Assembly (NCBI GenBank): GCA_964036045.1
Contig: OZ038379.1
Span: 19,592,001-19,656,000 of the forward strand
Reading direction: 5' to 3'
Length of the DNA stretch: 64,000 nt
From: Eutreptiella sp. 'Long Island Sound 2002'
Lineage: Eukaryota; Protista; Euglenida
A model generated the notes under the pieces. The model worked only from the letters and a program-made list of their open reading frames with translations. It ran no database searches and was not told where the DNA came from. Positions 19,445 to 32,934 of this stretch are shown here, in pieces. Position 1 is the stretch's first letter. Every line of letters starts with the position of its first letter. A program made the position numbers and the translations under genes.

Positions 19445-21572
19445 CTGAGAAAACCAGAGGGGCCTTGGGGGTCGGGGATGGGGCGCCGTAATTGTGTGTT
19501 GTGGAGGCGGTGCCTCCAGATGGCGTGTGGTTGTAGGGCAGCGTGTACGTGAGGAGGGGGTATTGCGCGCACGCGTGTGTGTGTTGGGAGGGGCGTGCCA
19601 TAGAGGCGGCGGAAACGTGCCCCGGGGTACTCCCAAGTGCACGCACAGGCTTGAGTCTTCAGGAGGAATTTGTCCACATTGCTTTGCCCAAGCCATTGGG
19701 GGAAAAGTGTTAATGGTACGCGAGTGTGGGACACTTTTCCCGCTACTCACGGGTGCTGCTTCTGCCCCTCAGCGTCCCTCCCGCGCTGACGCCGGCAATG
19801 CTCCACGTGCAGTCATTCTCATGACGATGAGGTTGGAGGGTGCTCAGCACATCTGATGCGGGGCATTACCACCACCAGCCCCAGGGGGTTCCGGGTCGCC
19901 AAGTGTTATCCAACAGGGGTGCGCTGCATTGCCATCGGCTTTCTCTCCCCGTTCTTGCGGTGTGCCGACGGCGTGTGGCGTGGCGGGGGGGGGGTGACCT
20001 CATTAAAAAACAGACAAATGCAAACCAGAGGTAATGCACTCCACAGTCAGGCATGAGTGCATCGTGGCCGGGGGGGGGGGGGGGATGCAGTATTATTATT
20101 ATCATTTTGTTCATCCGCCAGTCCCGAGTGCAGCCCCTATCGGGGAGCGGAATCATGGCCACGCCACGGTCCGTAATGGTGTTACTTGCTGGTCTGCCTG
20201 GGGTGTGTGTGGGGGGGGGGGGGGGGGGTACAGTACTATGGGAGAGAGTCTGTCCGAGATTGCAGCTACGGCCCTCGTGGCGCCCGCCCCCTGCCGGCGC
20301 TGGCAGGCCAGTCGCTCCCAAACCGCCGAAAGTGGGAGGGTGCTCTCCACCACAAATGATGTGGGTCAGCGCGGCAGAGGGCCAGGGGCGTTTGGGGCCC
20401 CAGGCGCTGCGCATCAGCGGTGCGCTGCAGTTGCAGGCCTTTTGCCTGCGTCGTCTGTGTGCCTCGTGCTGGCGCTTGGGAGGGACGTCTCGTGGGGCGA
20501 CCGCGTTCGTGAGGAGGGGGTCCAGCAGCAGTCCCTCGGCCCCAGCCCCCCAGGCCCTGCAACACCGGCCGCGCACGCGGACTGACCGCGAAACGCAATG
20601 CGGTTTCACTACAGAGACCAGATGGCACACCCCCACACGAGGGCCCAGTGATCCAGAGCAGTGAACGTGCGGCGAGGGCGCCCTGTGGCCCTGCCAGTGG
20701 GCCCATGGCAGCCGATTCATTGCGCCGGTCTCGGCCATCGAGTGCGCCGTCGGGGGTCCGCTGGACGGCGCTTGAGGGGGGGCGCCAAAGACTGAAGACC
20801 GGTAGGTCTAGGCCGTCCGCCCCCGGTGTGCGTCGCATGGCCCAGGGTCGTCTGGTGGGGGGGTGGGGGGGGTAGCGCCCCAGTGGACCCACTGTAATCC
20901 GTGCACAAACAGCACCACGTGTGATGGGGAGTGGCCGGCAGGAGACTGAGCAAATCCGACTGTTTTGCGCAATACTGCCCCCCCTTCTCTGCCCTCATCC
21001 CTCCGGCTGTTGGCATTGCCCCCCCCCCCCCTCCCCTCGAGGGATGGATATCCCCCCCCCTCCCCAGCACCCCTTCCCCTTCGGTTACGAGTTTCGAGAT
21101 TTAGCGCACCAACAACAGGCCCCAAAGGGGGTCGGGTGAAGGGGGTCCCTGATACCTCAACATAGACCCTCAAAATGATACCCACGACCCGCTGATCATT
21201 TTGAGGTACGTGCCCTTGGGCACATTCGTTTAAGGCGTTTCCCTTGCGGCCGCTTTGCGGCCCAATACAGAAGCCACCGGGCCTCAGACTGCCCTTTTCT
21301 GAGGACTCCTGCGGGCGTTCGGCGGCCCCGCCCCCAACAGAGCCCCCCCAGCCCCGCCCAAATACTGATGCCCCTATCATCTGCATCCCCGCCCCCCTCT
21401 CTGCCCTCCCCCCTCCTGCGGTAGGCATTGCCCGTCCCTCGCTGCCCCAAACGACGAAGGGGCCCACCAGCTGTAGGCTCTAGGCCCTTCCAGAGACGTC
21501 CTTCGGGGCTCCAAAGGGCCATCCCCCCCCCCCCCCTCAGAGGCAGGGCCAAGGGCGGCAGCGGGCACACAC

Positions 21573-26725: not shown

Positions 26726-29626
26726 GGACGGCGATGCAAGAAAGGGGTACGATGACTGATGACTGCCTGTAGAGTGCACTTGCACGGCAGTTTGACGACC
26801 ATGGGCTCCTTGGAGAGGCACTTGCACCGCACACCACACATGAAACTTTAGACTATTTCACCGCGAAACAGCCCCGTTCCCCCAATGTATGAGAAGAACC
26901 CCGCACGCAGGCAAACAGCAAAACACAAAGACAGAGTGCCCAGCATTGACGGTCAGCGCTTCGTAATGTGTTCATGCAACTACTCCCGAGTTGTACACAC
27001 CCAAAAGGGGCTCCCACTCCCACAGGGCCCGCTGGTGACCCAAGTAACAGATACATGCAAATCTGTGGCCAAAACCCCTGGAAACCAGTGGCTGTCTGGG
27101 ATGCACCGTGCTTTCATCTCCCCGCCGCACGCGCCTAGTGCTCCCCTTATGGCTCGAGTTTGACCATCATTACAAACCGGAGGGTATGCAGTTGCAATGC
27201 TATGCTCGACCACAGCGGGCTTGAAGGGGGTTGCAGACAAGCCGACAGGGGTTGAAAGGTAGGTTGTTTTGCTGGAGCCTTCCACCCGCCCACCAGTGTG
27301 TGGGTTATCCCAAATCAAAGTCCTGACATGTGAGGGTATCTTCACGTCTGGCTGTTCGCCATGAACAATGCTGAGGCTGTGAACAAAAAAACACTTTTTG
27401 TTGGCTGCGAGCTGTGGACAGAGATGAGTATGTGCTTTTGGCTTGTATTTGTGTTTCTGGTGGACAGAAGTGGTTGGGAACTGATCAACATTTGGCAGAG
27501 GGCGACGCACTGTGCAAAGGGCAGGAAAACAAAAAGTCTGACACGCATTCAGGCAAGCACATGGTGTCCCGGGCAGGCATGGGGTCCGGCTAGGCTAGTG
27601 TCCCAAGGAACCGCGACGGAACTTTCTTTCAGCCATTGGCACCAGAAGGTGGTCGCTGGAGGGGACCAACTGACAAACAGCTGTCACGGTTGAAACGCGA
27701 CACCGATGCCAACTTTTTTGTTTTTAGGTCAAGGGTGTGGGTTAAATGGCAGAATATTCCGCAGCAAACTTTTGCAGTCAATGCTGGTTTGCGTTACATT
27801 GACAGACGCAGAGCAATGCAGCGGCAAGGCACACAAAGAAGATGGCAAAATACGGAGGTTCAACCACAATTGGCCACAGGAATGTGCCATTCGACTCGCA
27901 TGTGCCACTCCTGCACCGCTGTGTACAACAGTGTGAAGTGTTTGGAGCGTGATATATAGGACTGGAGACTAGGCTCCCAAATGCTGTGGAGTGTTGTGCC
28001 CCATCATGTCGGACATCCAGACGGGTTAAGAGGGGGGCATTCATGAACGCAGGCGGTCCTTGAAGCAGATCAGGCACAGTTTAGATGTCCAACTCACAAA
28101 GTTTGGAGGTACAAAGAACAGTGCTGGGACCACTGGCAAGCATGGCCACAGGTGTTTAACACCGGGGCTGACCCGCCACCACGATGTGGTGACACGAGAA
28201 GATGCAAGAGCCATGACCCTTGAGGCTGTGGAAGACCCTGCAGAGCGCCTGCAGAGCCCCAGTGGAACGCCTACATCAGCAAACTCTTAACCATTCGATA
28301 ACCCAACGACCGTTGCGGGGACACATTGTGTACACAGTAACAAGCACAGCAAACCAAACGGCTCGCCGCACCGAATATTGGGGGCTGTCTCAGACGACGC
28401 CATGTTGAGACGGGGAGACTTCGGATCGGGTGCCCTGCATTTCCAGGCATCTGACCCTCGGTGTTAGCTGCGATGGACGAAGGCCACTTGCAAGCCTGCC
28501 ACTGCAGCCATGCAAGAGGGCCGGTTCCTGCGGTGTGCGTGGTCATCCCCCCCCCCACTGCACGGGGCATTCTGCATAAGCACAGGGAATGCAGGACACA
28601 AAGGGGCATGATAATGTGCGCACAGCCAAACGCAACTCAACCGATCTCACTGGCGAAGTGGTTGAAGATTGGGGTGCAGCACCGGGGCCTACCAATCACC
28701 GTCGGTTGGCCATCGATGGCCATCACACAACCGCCTCCCCCTCACACCCTCTGGCAAAAGGGGAAAATGTCAAAGAAAACCAGCCCCTGAAGGACCGTGC
28801 TGACCGGAAAGGGAAACAGGCGGCCGTCGGACGGCCCGACCCTCGTGACCACTGTCTAGCCCGCAGCACAAACCTGACAGGAAATCCAGGGAATTAGGCC
28901 GGCGATGCAGTGGAGGGTCACTGCCATGCCAGGCACTGCAGCACCGGGGGCACAGACCGCAGACGCGCAGCACGTACCCCTCTCCCGACCGACCTCTGCC
29001 CCTACCCGCCCATGTCATGCAGATCCAAAACAGAGGTCCATAATACACAACGCCACTGCGTGACATGTTGTCCTGTCGGTGCACCGCGGGGGCCCTTGTC
29101 GCTGTCTTCGTCTTTCCGGACGCCATCAGGTCCACTTCGCCCTTGTCTGCGTGTTCTCCCTCTCACCGGGCCGCCTTCTCGGGCCAGACCAGCCCCCGTC
29201 ACCCTCCGTCCATCCGAGTGTAGCCCCGGCTCCGGTCTCCGCGTTGGTGGGACCAGGTGTGGTGTCCCGGAGTTTCCGCGCAGCGCCCATTATTGGGGTA
29301 ACTTCACGGGACCCAACCTCACAAGCGCCACACACCCCAAAGCTGCTCATAAACGTCACGAAGTAGCACACCATCGCTGTGCACACTGTCTTTGAGCATA
29401 GCCCTTGGGAGCACAGCCCTTGGGCTGACGACGTTTCAAACCCAAGGACCCCCGGCGGTCCGTACCCCTGTGCGGCCCCATTTGCCACCCCCCCCCCCCC
29501 TGACTCGATTGGAGGTGTTCCCTCAGACCTCGGCCACCTACAACCCTCAGACCGCCCGTTGTGAGAAGAACAAAAGAGACAGGCCAGACACAAACATGGG
29601 CACGGCCCAAGGGGACGCACGGCCCA

Positions 29627-29908
29627 TCAATAGACTTGCTCGTGCCACTTGCCGCTGCCCTTCAGGCCCTTCTGCACCTCCTCCCACTGCAGGCCCTGCT
29701 TGGCCGCCGCCTCCTGCAGCATCTCCGTGATGCCGGGCATCATGAACTTGGACCCGGAGCAGTACATGTGCGCGCCGTCCTGCAGGAGGGCAAAGATCTC
29801 ATCCGCGTCCTGCCGCATCTTGTCCTGCACGAACATCTTCTCCCCCGCCGGCGTCTGCTCCTCCTCGGAATACGCGGTGACCACCCGGAACTGGTCGGGG
29901 TACGTGGC
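29627..29908 (-). CDS. petH: Ferredoxin-NADP+ reductase-like protein, exon 2
   Basis: Acceptor TTGCGCAG|GCC. ATYPDQFR...KMFVQDK...AHMYCSGSKFMMPG...WHEQVY* aligns with the C-terminus of plant/algal FNR, including the terminal Tyr. Confidence 0.93.
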   Translation of the reverse strand, partial: ATYPDQFRVVTAYSEEEQTPAGEKMFVQDKMRQDADEIFALLQDGAHMYCSGSKFMMPGITEMLQEAAAKQGLQWEEVQKGLKGSGKWHEQVY

Positions 29909-31484
29909 CTGCGCAATGAAATCCCGAATGAGAAGGACCCCCTCCCCCTGTGCGCAAGCACGGCGGGACACGGGGTGAATGCCGCCACGGACCCACAGCA
30001 GCCACATCGAAGTACCGTCGACATACCACAGGTACTGAGAGGGCAGATGCTTTGGTGGAGGAAGGATGGATAAGTTCGAGCATTGGACATGTGTTGCCTT
30101 CCACTCCCACCCCCTCAACGAGCTCCAGCTCTGGTGATACCCCGCCCAGATAACCTCCCGCTATCGCCGCCTGCGGCCTCCGCCATTCCGGTCAGAAGAC
30201 TTTTGAGCCCCGGCCAAGCACAGGGAGACCTTCCTGGGCCCGCCTGTACACCCGCACAAGTCAATTCTGTTGAGTCACTTGCGGACATCGATCAGTCATC
30301 TAATTCACCTCCATCTCCCAGTGAGTATGAGCCAGGGCACAAAGTGGCGATATCTGCCCAGGACGCCTGGGTTTGTTTGTTGTTACGCCCACCCCACCAC
30401 GTGTGCGCAGACGTATCGACACGGCGAGTGCCGAAGTCAGTTCGCCAATGGGTTTTTCTGGGGGGGAGGGGGGGTGAAGGTCAATTCCATTTCAATCCCG
30501 CCCGCCCCCGATTCCCCTCTAACCGTTGTTGCATCCGCCAGAACTTGCCATGCAATCGCTTTTGCAGCGGCTGGTGTCCACTTTCAACGGCACTTTCATC
30601 TGTTGAGGACCCCCTTCAGCGGCTCTTCCCCTCAGGCGCACCCCTGCACCAGAGATCAAGAGGAACGCGCCAAAATGGTCATGAAGGGTATTCGATCCAC
30701 AGCACACTTCTGCCCCGCAGGGCGGCCAGCCTCAGACATGGCCACCGCCTCTTGCCTTAAGACAGCCCAAGGCATGGCGGTCTGACGGGGATCCCACGGT
30801 TGGAGAAGGCTACGCGGCCATAAAGCAATGCAGTCACAGCACAAACAGCGGAATTTAGGGCGGAAGAGTCGGCGCCTGTTGTTTCAAAGCGGCATTCCTC
30901 GGCCGCAGAGCAAGACAGTTCACTTGGCTTGCGCTGCAGTTCAGTTGAATTCCACAGACCGAGGAAGGCGAAGGGGGAGGGGAGAGGGGGGGTACTTTGT
31001 GAGGGGAGTGGGGGAAAGAAACATCACTTCTTGACTTTGACGGACGGCACTTTAGTGAAACGAACCACCGTAGAAAGGCATTGGGTGCCTCCAGTCGTGC
31101 TTCCTGAAAGACGCAGCATCTCCGGTGGTTCAACGCCCTTGGGCTTGGGGGTTGAACTTGATGGTGGATGTGTCTGATATGACCCGGCCCCCGGGTTTCA
31201 CCGCGGGGTCAACTTCCCAGAGGTCACTGCATTGTCCTCCCCTGAACACGGGGCGCCGCACAGGGCACTGCGCACAGGCCTCGGGCACTGCTGTCGGGTT
31301 GTGGTGCTGTGGTGCTTGGGGCCAGGCGTGCTTTGGGAGGGTTGGGGGGCTGTTGAGCTGCGGTGCCGTGGTTCTGTGAGGCTGCGTGCCCGGGCTTTCA
31401 AGCCGTGGGGCTCTGGGACTCCGATTCGCTGATGCACAGATGACCCAAGTCCCCCTGTTGGTGCGGGGCTTGTGGCCTACGCAC

Positions 31485-32603
31485 CTGCAAATCCGCCAGC
31501 TCTTGCGCGTAGAGCAATCCGTCGGCGTTGCCGTCCCCGAAATACAGCAGCACCCGGCCCTTGAACTGGTACCCCGGCACGTTCTCGTAGAACATGCGCC
31601 GCCAGAACGCCCGGTAAGGCGCGATGCCGGTGCCGGTGGCGACGCAGATGTGCACGGCGTCGGGGTCCTCGTCCAGTAGCATCGCCTTGCCAGCGGGCCC
31701 GGTCATCGTCAGGGTGGTGCCGGGCGTGGCCTCGCACAGGAAGTGCGAGCACAGCTCCTTCTTCATGCCCCCGATGGACGGGTCCCACCACGCGATCTTC
31801 TTGACGCACAGGCTCGTGGTCTGCCCGTCGCAGGTGTCCCCGTACCGCGAGGCCGCCACGGTGTACAGCCGGGCGTAGTGCGGCTTCTCGTTGCCGTCCT
31901 TGTCGACGTCCACCCCCGGGGGGATGACCCCGTAGCAGTGGCCCTCGCGGCACTGGACCTGCCCGGCGGTGTCCACGACGATGTGGTAGGTCTCCCCGAG
32001 GGCGTCGGGGCCCGTGATCTTCTCCACCGACCGCACGACCCCCTCGAAGGGCGTGTCTTTGGTGTAGGCGTTGAGCGGGGCCTCGCCCTCCTCCTGATCC
32101 AGGGGCACGTCCTCGCGCGTGATCTCCGTCCCGGTCACGGCGGCCATGCACAACGCCGATGGCGCCGCCGCGGACGCGCCGGTGGGGGCCCTCGTGGAGG
32201 GCTGCAGGTACCGCAGCCCCATCATCAGTACCCCCATGATCCCAAACATCGCGAGCGTGGGGCGGTAGACAGCGTGCGCCAAGGGGGTCTGGAAGATCCC
32301 GTTCCCAACTCTCAGCCTCGGGGCCTGTGCCGCCCCTGGGCCCTCGGTCCATTGATCGACGTACGCTTCTGTTCGCCTCTGGGCCGTCGCACCCCGCTGC
32401 CAGGGAGCGGGAGTGGCCACCGATGGCTTGGTGACGGTGGTGGCAGAGACGGCTGTGTACAGCGCGCTTGGACTGGCAGAGACCATGGACAACGACAGGA
32501 TGGCCGCAGCCGTCAGGCAGGCCGCACCCAGCACGGCCCACGGGCGAGGGTCAGGGCGTGCAGGGGGAGGCTGGGGGGCACCCAAAGTGTTGTACGAGGC
32601 CAT
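31485..32603 (-). CDS. petH: Ferredoxin-NADP+ reductase-like protein, exon 1 (with two-TM plastid presequence); divergent paralogue, 466 aa total
   Basis: PLN..SVEKITG..GETYHIV..YGVIPPG..RLY..SRYGD..SLCV..MTGPAG..CVATGTGIAPYR match plant-type FNR. Donor CAG|GTGCGT in phase 0. The presequence has two hydrophobic segments. Confidence 0.95.
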
Positions 32604-32632
32604 GGCTCACGGCAGGACTGAGCACACAACAA
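32604..32632 (-). promoter_or_regulatory. Putative trans-splice acceptor of the FNR-like gene
   Basis: TTGTTGTGTGCTCAG ends at 32618, 14 nt upstream of the ATG. Confidence 0.5.
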
Positions 32633-32934
32633 TGCACACGCATACACACAACAAAAAGGGAGTGTGCGTGTGCATATTTAGGAGCGTAGCCCTTGGCTTG
32701 AAGGGCACTTAGTCCCACCCCGTCCTTCCCCGAGGGTCGCGCGGCAGGTTGCCTTCGGCGCCGACAGAACAAGAGGCTCCACCGAGGGGGGCGGCCTGTT
32801 CGAATTCTATACCCCAACCGGGTGCGAAAACTTTTGGGGGTCTGGAGGGGGGGAAGGGGAGGGGGGGCGGGGGTAGGTGGGTCGGCCGGTCAGCCGCCAT
32901 GGTCCCTAGAAGGGGGGGGGTCAGTGGGTACCCC

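Follow-up and report, generated by a model that had tools for sequence, protein, structure and literature searches.

A euglenophyte plastid ferredoxin-NADP reductase paralogue with altered active-site and nucleotide-pocket residues in Eutreptiella

Gene structure, transcript and a canonical paralogue

The window analyzed here is a 64,000-nucleotide (nt) stretch of the Eutreptiella sp. 'Long Island Sound 2002' genome (GCA_964036045.1, contig OZ038379.1, positions 19,592,001 to 19,656,000). Its minus strand carries a two-exon gene (32603..31485 and 29908..29627) encoding a 466-amino acid (aa) plastid-targeted ferredoxin-NADP reductase (FNR) in which all three classical catalytic residues of plant-type FNR are replaced. 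Exon 1 (31485..32603; aa 1-373) encodes a bipartite plastid presequence, the FAD-binding domain, and the first half of the NAD(P)-binding domain, and it matched RNA contigs with 0 mismatches. Exon 2 (29627..29908; aa 374-466 plus the stop codon) encodes the second half of the NAD(P)-binding domain, as delineated by Pfam, alignments to Protein Data Bank (PDB) structures, and RNA contigs. The single intron between them (29909..31484) is 1576 nt long with GT-AG borders, and the Pfam NAD_binding_1 match continued over the exon junction, with profile positions 2-49 in exon 1 and 52-107 in exon 2. The presequence comprised about aa 1-150 (32154..32603), ahead of the FNR domain, where PDB alignments started near aa 167. 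A hydropathy scan located a strongly hydrophobic segment at about aa 21-45 of the presequence; a second, weaker segment at about aa 116-135 lay below the 1.5 threshold and was read by eye from the sequence.

The window protein was identical over 466/466 residues to a protein (P0191) from Eutreptiella gymnastica NIES-381 (MMETSP0809; EukProt 'E. braarudii'; taxid 73025), and the coding sequence was identical at the nucleotide level to mRNA contig L009. The 5' end of this mRNA consisted of the spliced-leader (SL) tail TTTTTTTTCG followed by 14 nt that matched the genome immediately after an AG at 32619-32618, the minus-strand acceptor for SL trans-splicing (32618..32619). The mature mRNA thus has its first ATG at 32603, and its 14-nt 5' untranslated region (UTR; 32604..32617) was identical between mRNA and window. 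The 3' UTR spanned 129 nt (29498..29626), all of which (129/129) matched the 3' end of the mRNA, and contig 1 of RNA run X1 also ended at 29498. Splicing was evident in two RNA runs of one organism label and one estuary metatranscriptome, whose contigs (X1, X2, X4) skipped exactly the 1576 nt of the intron and had 0 differing letters over both exons. The intron was retained in DNA run X8, where a 3339-nt contig spanned it and the whole locus was covered without differences. Since the DNA and RNA contigs both matched the window, the substitutions are real in DNA and RNA. The initial annotation had described an intact, correctly spliced gene with a presequence, a terminal Tyr and a high third-codon-position GC content (GC3), and each of these features was confirmed, with a GC3 of 0.90 and with expression documented by the identical mRNA and the exact intron skip.

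The window gene is a true paralogue, and Eutreptiella also carries a standard, expressed FNR. In ENA assembly ERZ25074135 the window open reading frame (ORF; P0001) was located on contig ctg9130, and a 167-aa ORF identical to the C-terminus of the canonical FNR (P0007) on contig ctg10494, the two contigs having similar stated coverage. The full canonical mRNA mapped to ctg10494 (L011 4500-7073) in five exons at 99.6-100% identity, and the C-terminal ORF also occurred on partial transcripts in the two JGI copies of the MMETSP assemblies containing P0191. The presence of P0007 in this assembly with all canonical motifs, namely RLYSIAS, ALSREQ...GGKMY, YFCGLKGM, and WHVEVY with every standard residue, identifies it as the standard FNR of the organism. 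Both paralogues had the same fold, about 55% identity to each other, expression in the same transcriptomes, and an extended N-terminus ahead of the FNR domain, which in the canonical protein also looks like a plastid presequence. They differed in their score on the PetH profile (360 bits for the canonical and 283 for the window protein) and in gene architecture, with five exons and introns of 72-170 nt in the canonical gene vs two exons and one long intron (1576 nt, 60% GC) in the divergent one. GC3 also contrasted sharply between these two genes of one genome, at 0.68 for the canonical and 0.90 for the divergent copy.

These data bear on whether the unusual gene could be an artefact or a gene in decay, whether through assembly or sequencing error, as an unexpressed duplicate, or as the organism's only FNR. 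Nothing beyond the residues themselves spoke for such an origin, which we consider extremely improbable. Sequencing or assembly error was ruled out by the base-for-base agreement of DNA contigs and three independent RNA data sets, and an unexpressed pseudogene by the SL trans-spliced and spliced transcript together with a ratio of nonsynonymous to synonymous substitution rates (dN/dS) of <0.4. The canonical FNR in the same assembly ruled out an only copy, and orthologues of the window gene occur in three other lineages.

Upstream of the FNR gene, on its minus-strand side, a short dispersed high-copy element occupied 32725-32850. Summed contig depth in DNA run X8 rose there from about 46 to 1,150-27,000, many contigs diverged at 32782/32783, and the window held one partial copy at 21141-21204 (83% over 66 nt). 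Rfam and tRNA scans of the element returned no meaningful match.

Active-site replacements and the second euglenophyte FNR clade

HMMER alignments to solved FNRs placed three residues of the window protein opposite the catalytic set. Thr248 (codon ACC, 31860..31862) aligned with the Ser of RLYSIAS (Ser96 in spinach, Ser80 in Anabaena), Ser424 (codon TCC, 29756-29758) with the Cys of YFCGLKGM (Cys272 in spinach), and Gln464 (codon CAA, 29636-29638) with the Glu of WHVEVY (Glu312 in spinach). Ser424 directly follows a Cys (Cys423-Ser424, 29756..29761) and Gln464 follows a Glu (Glu463-Gln464, 29636..29641), while the flavin-stacking C-terminal Tyr466 (29630..29632) was retained. Among 173 other plastid-type FNRs the three columns were S in 100%, C in 99%, and E in 98% of sequences, so the Thr, Ser, and Gln of the window protein are far from chance variation, and the protein lacks the catalytic Ser96/Cys272/Glu312 set of plant-type FNR.

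The same sites are those classically studied, as PDB titles include spinach S96V and E312A/L/Q, pea C266M, and Anabaena S80A and E301A. Our literature search found no open paper with kinetic data on S96, C272, and E312 mutants. Residual activity among single Ser96, Cys272, and Glu312 mutants varies widely, and conservative replacements are the mildest. The Ser96-Glu312 pair is hydrogen-bonded to flavin N5 and modulates NADP+ affinity, semiquinone stability, and the electron-transfer rate (review, PMC9687028).

A homologue search of 5.8 billion proteins, clustered at 90% identity, returned only three other close clusters, with 67-68% identity to the window FNR, and all remaining matches had ≤58%. 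The three corresponding lineages were represented by two ENA transcriptome assemblies (P0002/P0178), by Euglena gracilis EG_transcript_13435 (P0003; 68% identity), and by JGI and Logan contigs (P0004/P0180-182). A scan of metagenome contigs with the clade alignment found no further relative. The window FNR, P0002, P0003, and P0180 were monophyletic with 100% support on a long stem. The position of this second clade relative to the canonical euglenophyte clade was left open by the free quick-search tree. A tree joining the two clades gained 23.5 log-likelihood units over the quick-search tree (p-AU 0.91), with long branches involved, and is compatible with a duplication of the canonical FNR within the euglenophyte lineage. 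Identity within the second clade was 62-72%, vs 82-89% within the canonical euglenophyte clade. The transcript contig of the P0002 orthologue (L001) had, at 1665-2339, a 678-nt tail after the stop codon with a 225-aa open frame lacking any Pfam match; the tail is probably a long 3' UTR.

The second clade and its restriction to photosynthetic euglenophytes are already published. Füssy et al. 2020 (mSphere, PMC7580956) described two related euglenophyte FNR clades, one shared with the non-photosynthetic Euglena longa and one confined to photosynthetic species, and suggested by analogy with plants that the latter serves photosynthesis. The window FNR groups with EG_transcript_13435 at 100% support and so belongs to this second clade. 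In the data set of Füssy et al., E. gracilis transcripts 8143 and 13435 are both listed as members of the plastid proteome, and an E. longa orthologue is given for 8143 alone. The window gene thus has, in E. gracilis, an orthologue of confirmed plastid location that disappeared along with photosynthesis, which ties the second clade to photosynthetic plastids. Consistent with this, no E. longa member appeared among our second-clade matches. Two N-terminal transmembrane domains are reported for an E. gracilis form that has no counterpart in E. longa, and the two hydrophobic segments of the window presequence resemble this layout. The paper lists such a form as GDJR01020733, which may or may not be the same sequence as EG_transcript_13435. 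In the literature we searched, including the accessible part of Füssy et al. 2020 (PMC7580956), the non-canonical active site and 2'-phosphate pocket of the second clade were not mentioned.

The FNR of E. longa (P0109 / P0121 and cluster members, GGOE010069xx) had many transcript isoforms, one with an insertion of about 17 aa in the FAD domain and another in which about 65 aa of that domain, including the R-x-Y-S motif, were gone. These isoforms may be products of intron retention or mis-splicing.

Within the second clade the three active-site changes were shared unevenly. Position 272 was non-Cys in 4/4 lineages (Ser, Ala, Ser, Ser), and the Cys one residue before it was invariant across the clade. 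Ser96Thr occurred in three of the four lineages, with Ser retained in P0002, and Glu312Gln, together with Val311Glu, was found only in the window species, all other members keeping Glu312. Because of this uneven sharing, the pattern of residues argues for stepwise accumulation of the Thr, Ser, and Gln changes, not for one selected set. The initial annotation had correctly identified the replacement of Ser, Cys, and Glu by Thr, Ser, and Gln, with the codons at 31860-31862 and 29756-29758 exactly placed, and the alignments and the 173-FNR background bear it out, as do the contigs of DNA run X8 and of the RNA runs. Its further proposal that the three changes had been selected together was rejected, since only two of them are shared with orthologues. 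It had also suggested a search for a canonical FNR and for orthologues carrying the same Thr/Ser/Gln triplet; the former was found, Thr and Ser were partly shared, and Gln was present in no orthologue.

Nucleotide pocket, cofactor motifs and selection

The second clade departed at about 55 positions from residues that are 93-100% conserved elsewhere, and many of these positions lie in or beside nucleotide-binding segments. Judged from the alignments, remodelling of the 2'-phosphate pocket, on which the initial annotation is silent, is a stronger clade-wide signal than the three active-site changes. The Arg of ALSREQ, which binds the 2'-phosphate (spinach Arg235, Anabaena Arg224; role from PMC8944804), was Glu, Glu, Glu, and Asp in the four lineages, and is Glu388 in the window protein (Ser387-Glu388, 29864..29869). 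In the 2'-phosphate/adenine pocket (Glu396-Lys397-Met398-Phe399, 29831..29842) the Tyr of KMYIQD (spinach Tyr246, Anabaena Tyr235) was Phe in all four lineages (Phe399), and the Gly ahead of the Lys was Glu in three. The CGLKGM loop was changed in every lineage as well, from Leu to Ser (Ser426) and from Gly to Phe or Leu (position 428). Columns 388, 399, 424, 426, and 428 were 97-99% conserved in the 173 other FNRs and changed in 4/4 clade lineages; the pocket Arg and Tyr columns were 99% conserved outside the clade. By index arithmetic on the Anabaena alignments, the changed pocket and loop residues correspond to Arg224, Tyr235, and Leu263. In Anabaena FNR, Ser223, Arg224, Arg233, and Tyr235 recognise the 2'-phospho-AMP (2'-P-AMP) moiety and loops 155-160 and 261-268 hold the pyrophosphate (PMC8944804). 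The recognition signature Ser-Arg ... Lys/Arg-x-Tyr is thus replaced in the window protein by Ser387-Glu388 ... Glu396-Lys397-Met-Phe399.

These natural changes affect the 2'-P residues and the 261-268 loop, which are also the elements examined with engineered Anabaena specificity mutants (T155G/A160T and L263P in PDB titles). Those mutants are laboratory-made, whereas the euglenophyte combination is natural and conserved. Anabaena FNR coenzyme-specificity mutants were reportedly described by Medina in 2001 and Tejero in 2003.

An alternative reading is that the window gene encodes the ordinary euglenophyte photosynthetic ferredoxin:NADP+ reductase, which reduces NADP+ normally and tolerates its substitutions. 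The canonical copy would then be the 'non-photosynthetic' form that E. longa has retained, passing electrons from NADPH to ferredoxin. Füssy et al. 2020 proposed the same division of labour; the clade is present in photosynthetic species only, and its E. gracilis member is listed in the plastid proteome under 'photosynthesis'. Transcripts of the window gene were full-length in both MMETSP assemblies and those of the canonical copy were fragments only, which hints weakly at higher expression. The replacements by Thr, Ser, and Gln are conservative in chemical terms, crystal structures of E312Q, S96V, and C266M show that these sites have been probed by mutagenesis, and several mutants of this kind retain partial activity. 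This reading has to accommodate an acidic residue at the 2'-phosphate Arg and Phe at the Tyr in all four lineages, along with an extra Glu beside the Lys in three, and the altered residues are those reported to recognise 2'-P-AMP (PMC8944804). One would also expect a main photosynthetic FNR to match or exceed a housekeeping form in conservation, whereas the second clade is far more divergent. We treat an ordinary photosynthetic FNR as a possible but rather unlikely explanation.

The motifs that hold the cofactors were retained. Across the clade, R-x-Y (R245, Y247), LCVKK, LCSHFLC, K-M-F-x-Q-D, and the terminal Tyr (Y466) were invariant, and the window protein carried the complete FAD-binding signature of R-x-Y-(S/T), LCV(K/R)(K/R), CS-x-FLC, and C-terminal Tyr. 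The pyrophosphate motif TGTGIAP was also present, with T, G, T, G, A, and P invariant in 58 aligned sequences and Ile replaced by Val in E. gracilis. An AlphaFold2 (AF2) model of residues 150-466 had a mean pLDDT of 90.6 and a template modelling (TM) score of 0.91 to maize root FNR, and together with Pfam NAD_binding_1 it supports a two-domain FNR fold of an FAD beta-barrel and an NAD(P)-binding alpha/beta domain. The closest matches in sequence and structure were plant FNRs (maize root 5H59/3LO8, spinach 1FNB; TM 0.91, 46% identity), which have the motifs for FAD and pyrophosphate, as well as the terminal Tyr, in common with the window protein and differ from it in the Ser96/Cys272/Glu312 set and Arg235/Tyr246, all replaced in the latter. 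The best profile was that of PetH-type FNR (283 bits), vs <45 bits for models of NADH-dependent families, and the tree placed the protein among plastid FNRs and not with the NADH-dependent, cytochrome b5 reductase type of the FNR superfamily.

Pairwise dN/dS over the mature domain was 0.13-0.15 against the clade lineage with a GC3 of 0.68 and about 0.35 against the lineage with a GC3 of 0.92, where the value is probably an overestimate because dS is depressed by shared codon bias. The window FNR is thus under purifying selection (dN/dS 0.13-0.35). Phylogeny and dN/dS had been put forward in the initial annotation as checks on the gene, and they returned a paralogue clade at 100% support and constraint on the protein.

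The same evidence constrains the reading that the protein uses no pyridine nucleotide at all, either as a pseudoenzyme or scaffold or as a flavoprotein that oxidises ferredoxin and hands the electrons to a different acceptor, such as the quinone pool or cytochrome b6f in cyclic flow. The change of all three classical catalytic residues in Eutreptiella, the acidified 2'-phosphate pocket, the accelerated evolution of the clade, and its loss together with photosynthesis in E. longa are all in keeping with such a function. Yet TGTG-AP (with Ile or Val at the open position), K-M-F-x-Q-D, and the C-terminal Tyr are clade-invariant, and there would be no obvious need for them without a dinucleotide. 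Other members also keep Glu312, one keeps Ser96, and dN/dS is well below 1. In a pseudoenzyme the binding motifs would be expected to go together with the catalytic residues, and here the FAD and dinucleotide motifs were invariant. We judge a nucleotide-independent protein improbable, if not negligibly so. Of the two functions offered in the initial annotation, the pseudoenzyme or tether is accordingly disfavoured by the invariant FAD, TGTG-AP, K-M-F-x-Q-D, and Tyr residues, and the evidence agrees with the other, an enzyme whose reaction has changed.

Coenzyme use and a role beside the canonical FNR

The structure of the gene and its expression were established directly, as were its paralogy, its place in the second clade, the pattern of residues, the fold, and purifying selection. 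The explanation we favour, to which we give about even chances, is an active ferredoxin-linked flavoenzyme whose nucleotide preference is relaxed or switched and whose hydride and proton transfer is re-tuned. The protein would be a plastid-imported flavoprotein of the plant-type FNR fold, most likely still FAD-binding, from a euglenophyte-specific paralogue clade that probably originated by duplication of the canonical FNR. Because the FAD site, the pyrophosphate site, and the gating C-terminal Tyr are conserved, pyridine dinucleotide binding and hydride transfer would be expected. The pocket that in ordinary FNR selects NADP(H) is acidified, with Glu or Asp in place of Arg, Phe in place of Tyr, and, in three of the four lineages, Glu in place of Gly. 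Residues on the nicotinamide side have been re-tuned as well: Thr replaces Ser, Ser or Ala replaces Cys (with a Cys one position earlier), Ser replaces Leu, Phe or Leu replaces Gly, and in Eutreptiella Gln replaces Glu. The most likely consequence would be use of NAD(H), or weak binding of NADP(H), with altered flavin redox and proton-transfer kinetics, and the enzyme would act beside the canonical FNR in photosynthetic plastids.

A cofactor-less scaffold seems unlikely because the protein, under purifying selection, keeps all motifs that contact FAD as well as the dinucleotide motif and the gating Tyr, and ordinary NADP(H) handling seems equally unlikely because the 2'-phosphate Arg is acidic in every lineage. 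NADH-dependent relatives such as cytochrome b5 reductase and the flavin domain of nitrate reductase have RxYT, where Thr takes the place of Ser, and are acidic at the ribose 2' site, and the second clade appears shifted in their direction.

Several points weigh against an active enzyme with changed nucleotide preference. The AF2 model contains no cofactors. Of the 2'-phosphate site, Lys397 is kept, as is Ser387 in three of the four lineages, and NADP(H) may therefore still bind. The second clade evolves faster than the canonical one, which could mean relaxed constraint. Finally, Füssy et al. 2020, by plant analogy, took the clade for the usual photosynthetic form that reduces NADP+; within it, Glu312Gln occurs in Eutreptiella NIES-381 only.

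Plastid FNR is a textbook case of near-absolute preference for NADP(H) and of an invariant Ser/Cys/Glu active site. The second euglenophyte clade, which is conserved, expressed, and linked to photosynthesis, appears to break both rules while keeping its cofactor sites, and so offers enzymologists a natural experiment in the tuning of hydride transfer and the choice of coenzyme. It also reopens the question of which euglenophyte FNR makes NADPH in the light and what the other does with ferredoxin electrons, for which stromal NADH supply, cyclic flow, and a safety valve are candidate roles. More tentatively, photosynthetic euglenophytes might carry a natural plastid-type FNR whose coenzyme has changed from NADP(H) to NAD(H), or one that has abandoned pyridine nucleotides and oxidises ferredoxin for another acceptor. 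If true, their plastids would have a light-driven electron route that bypasses NADPH, and no earlier case of a natural coenzyme switch would be known within the plastidic FNR family.

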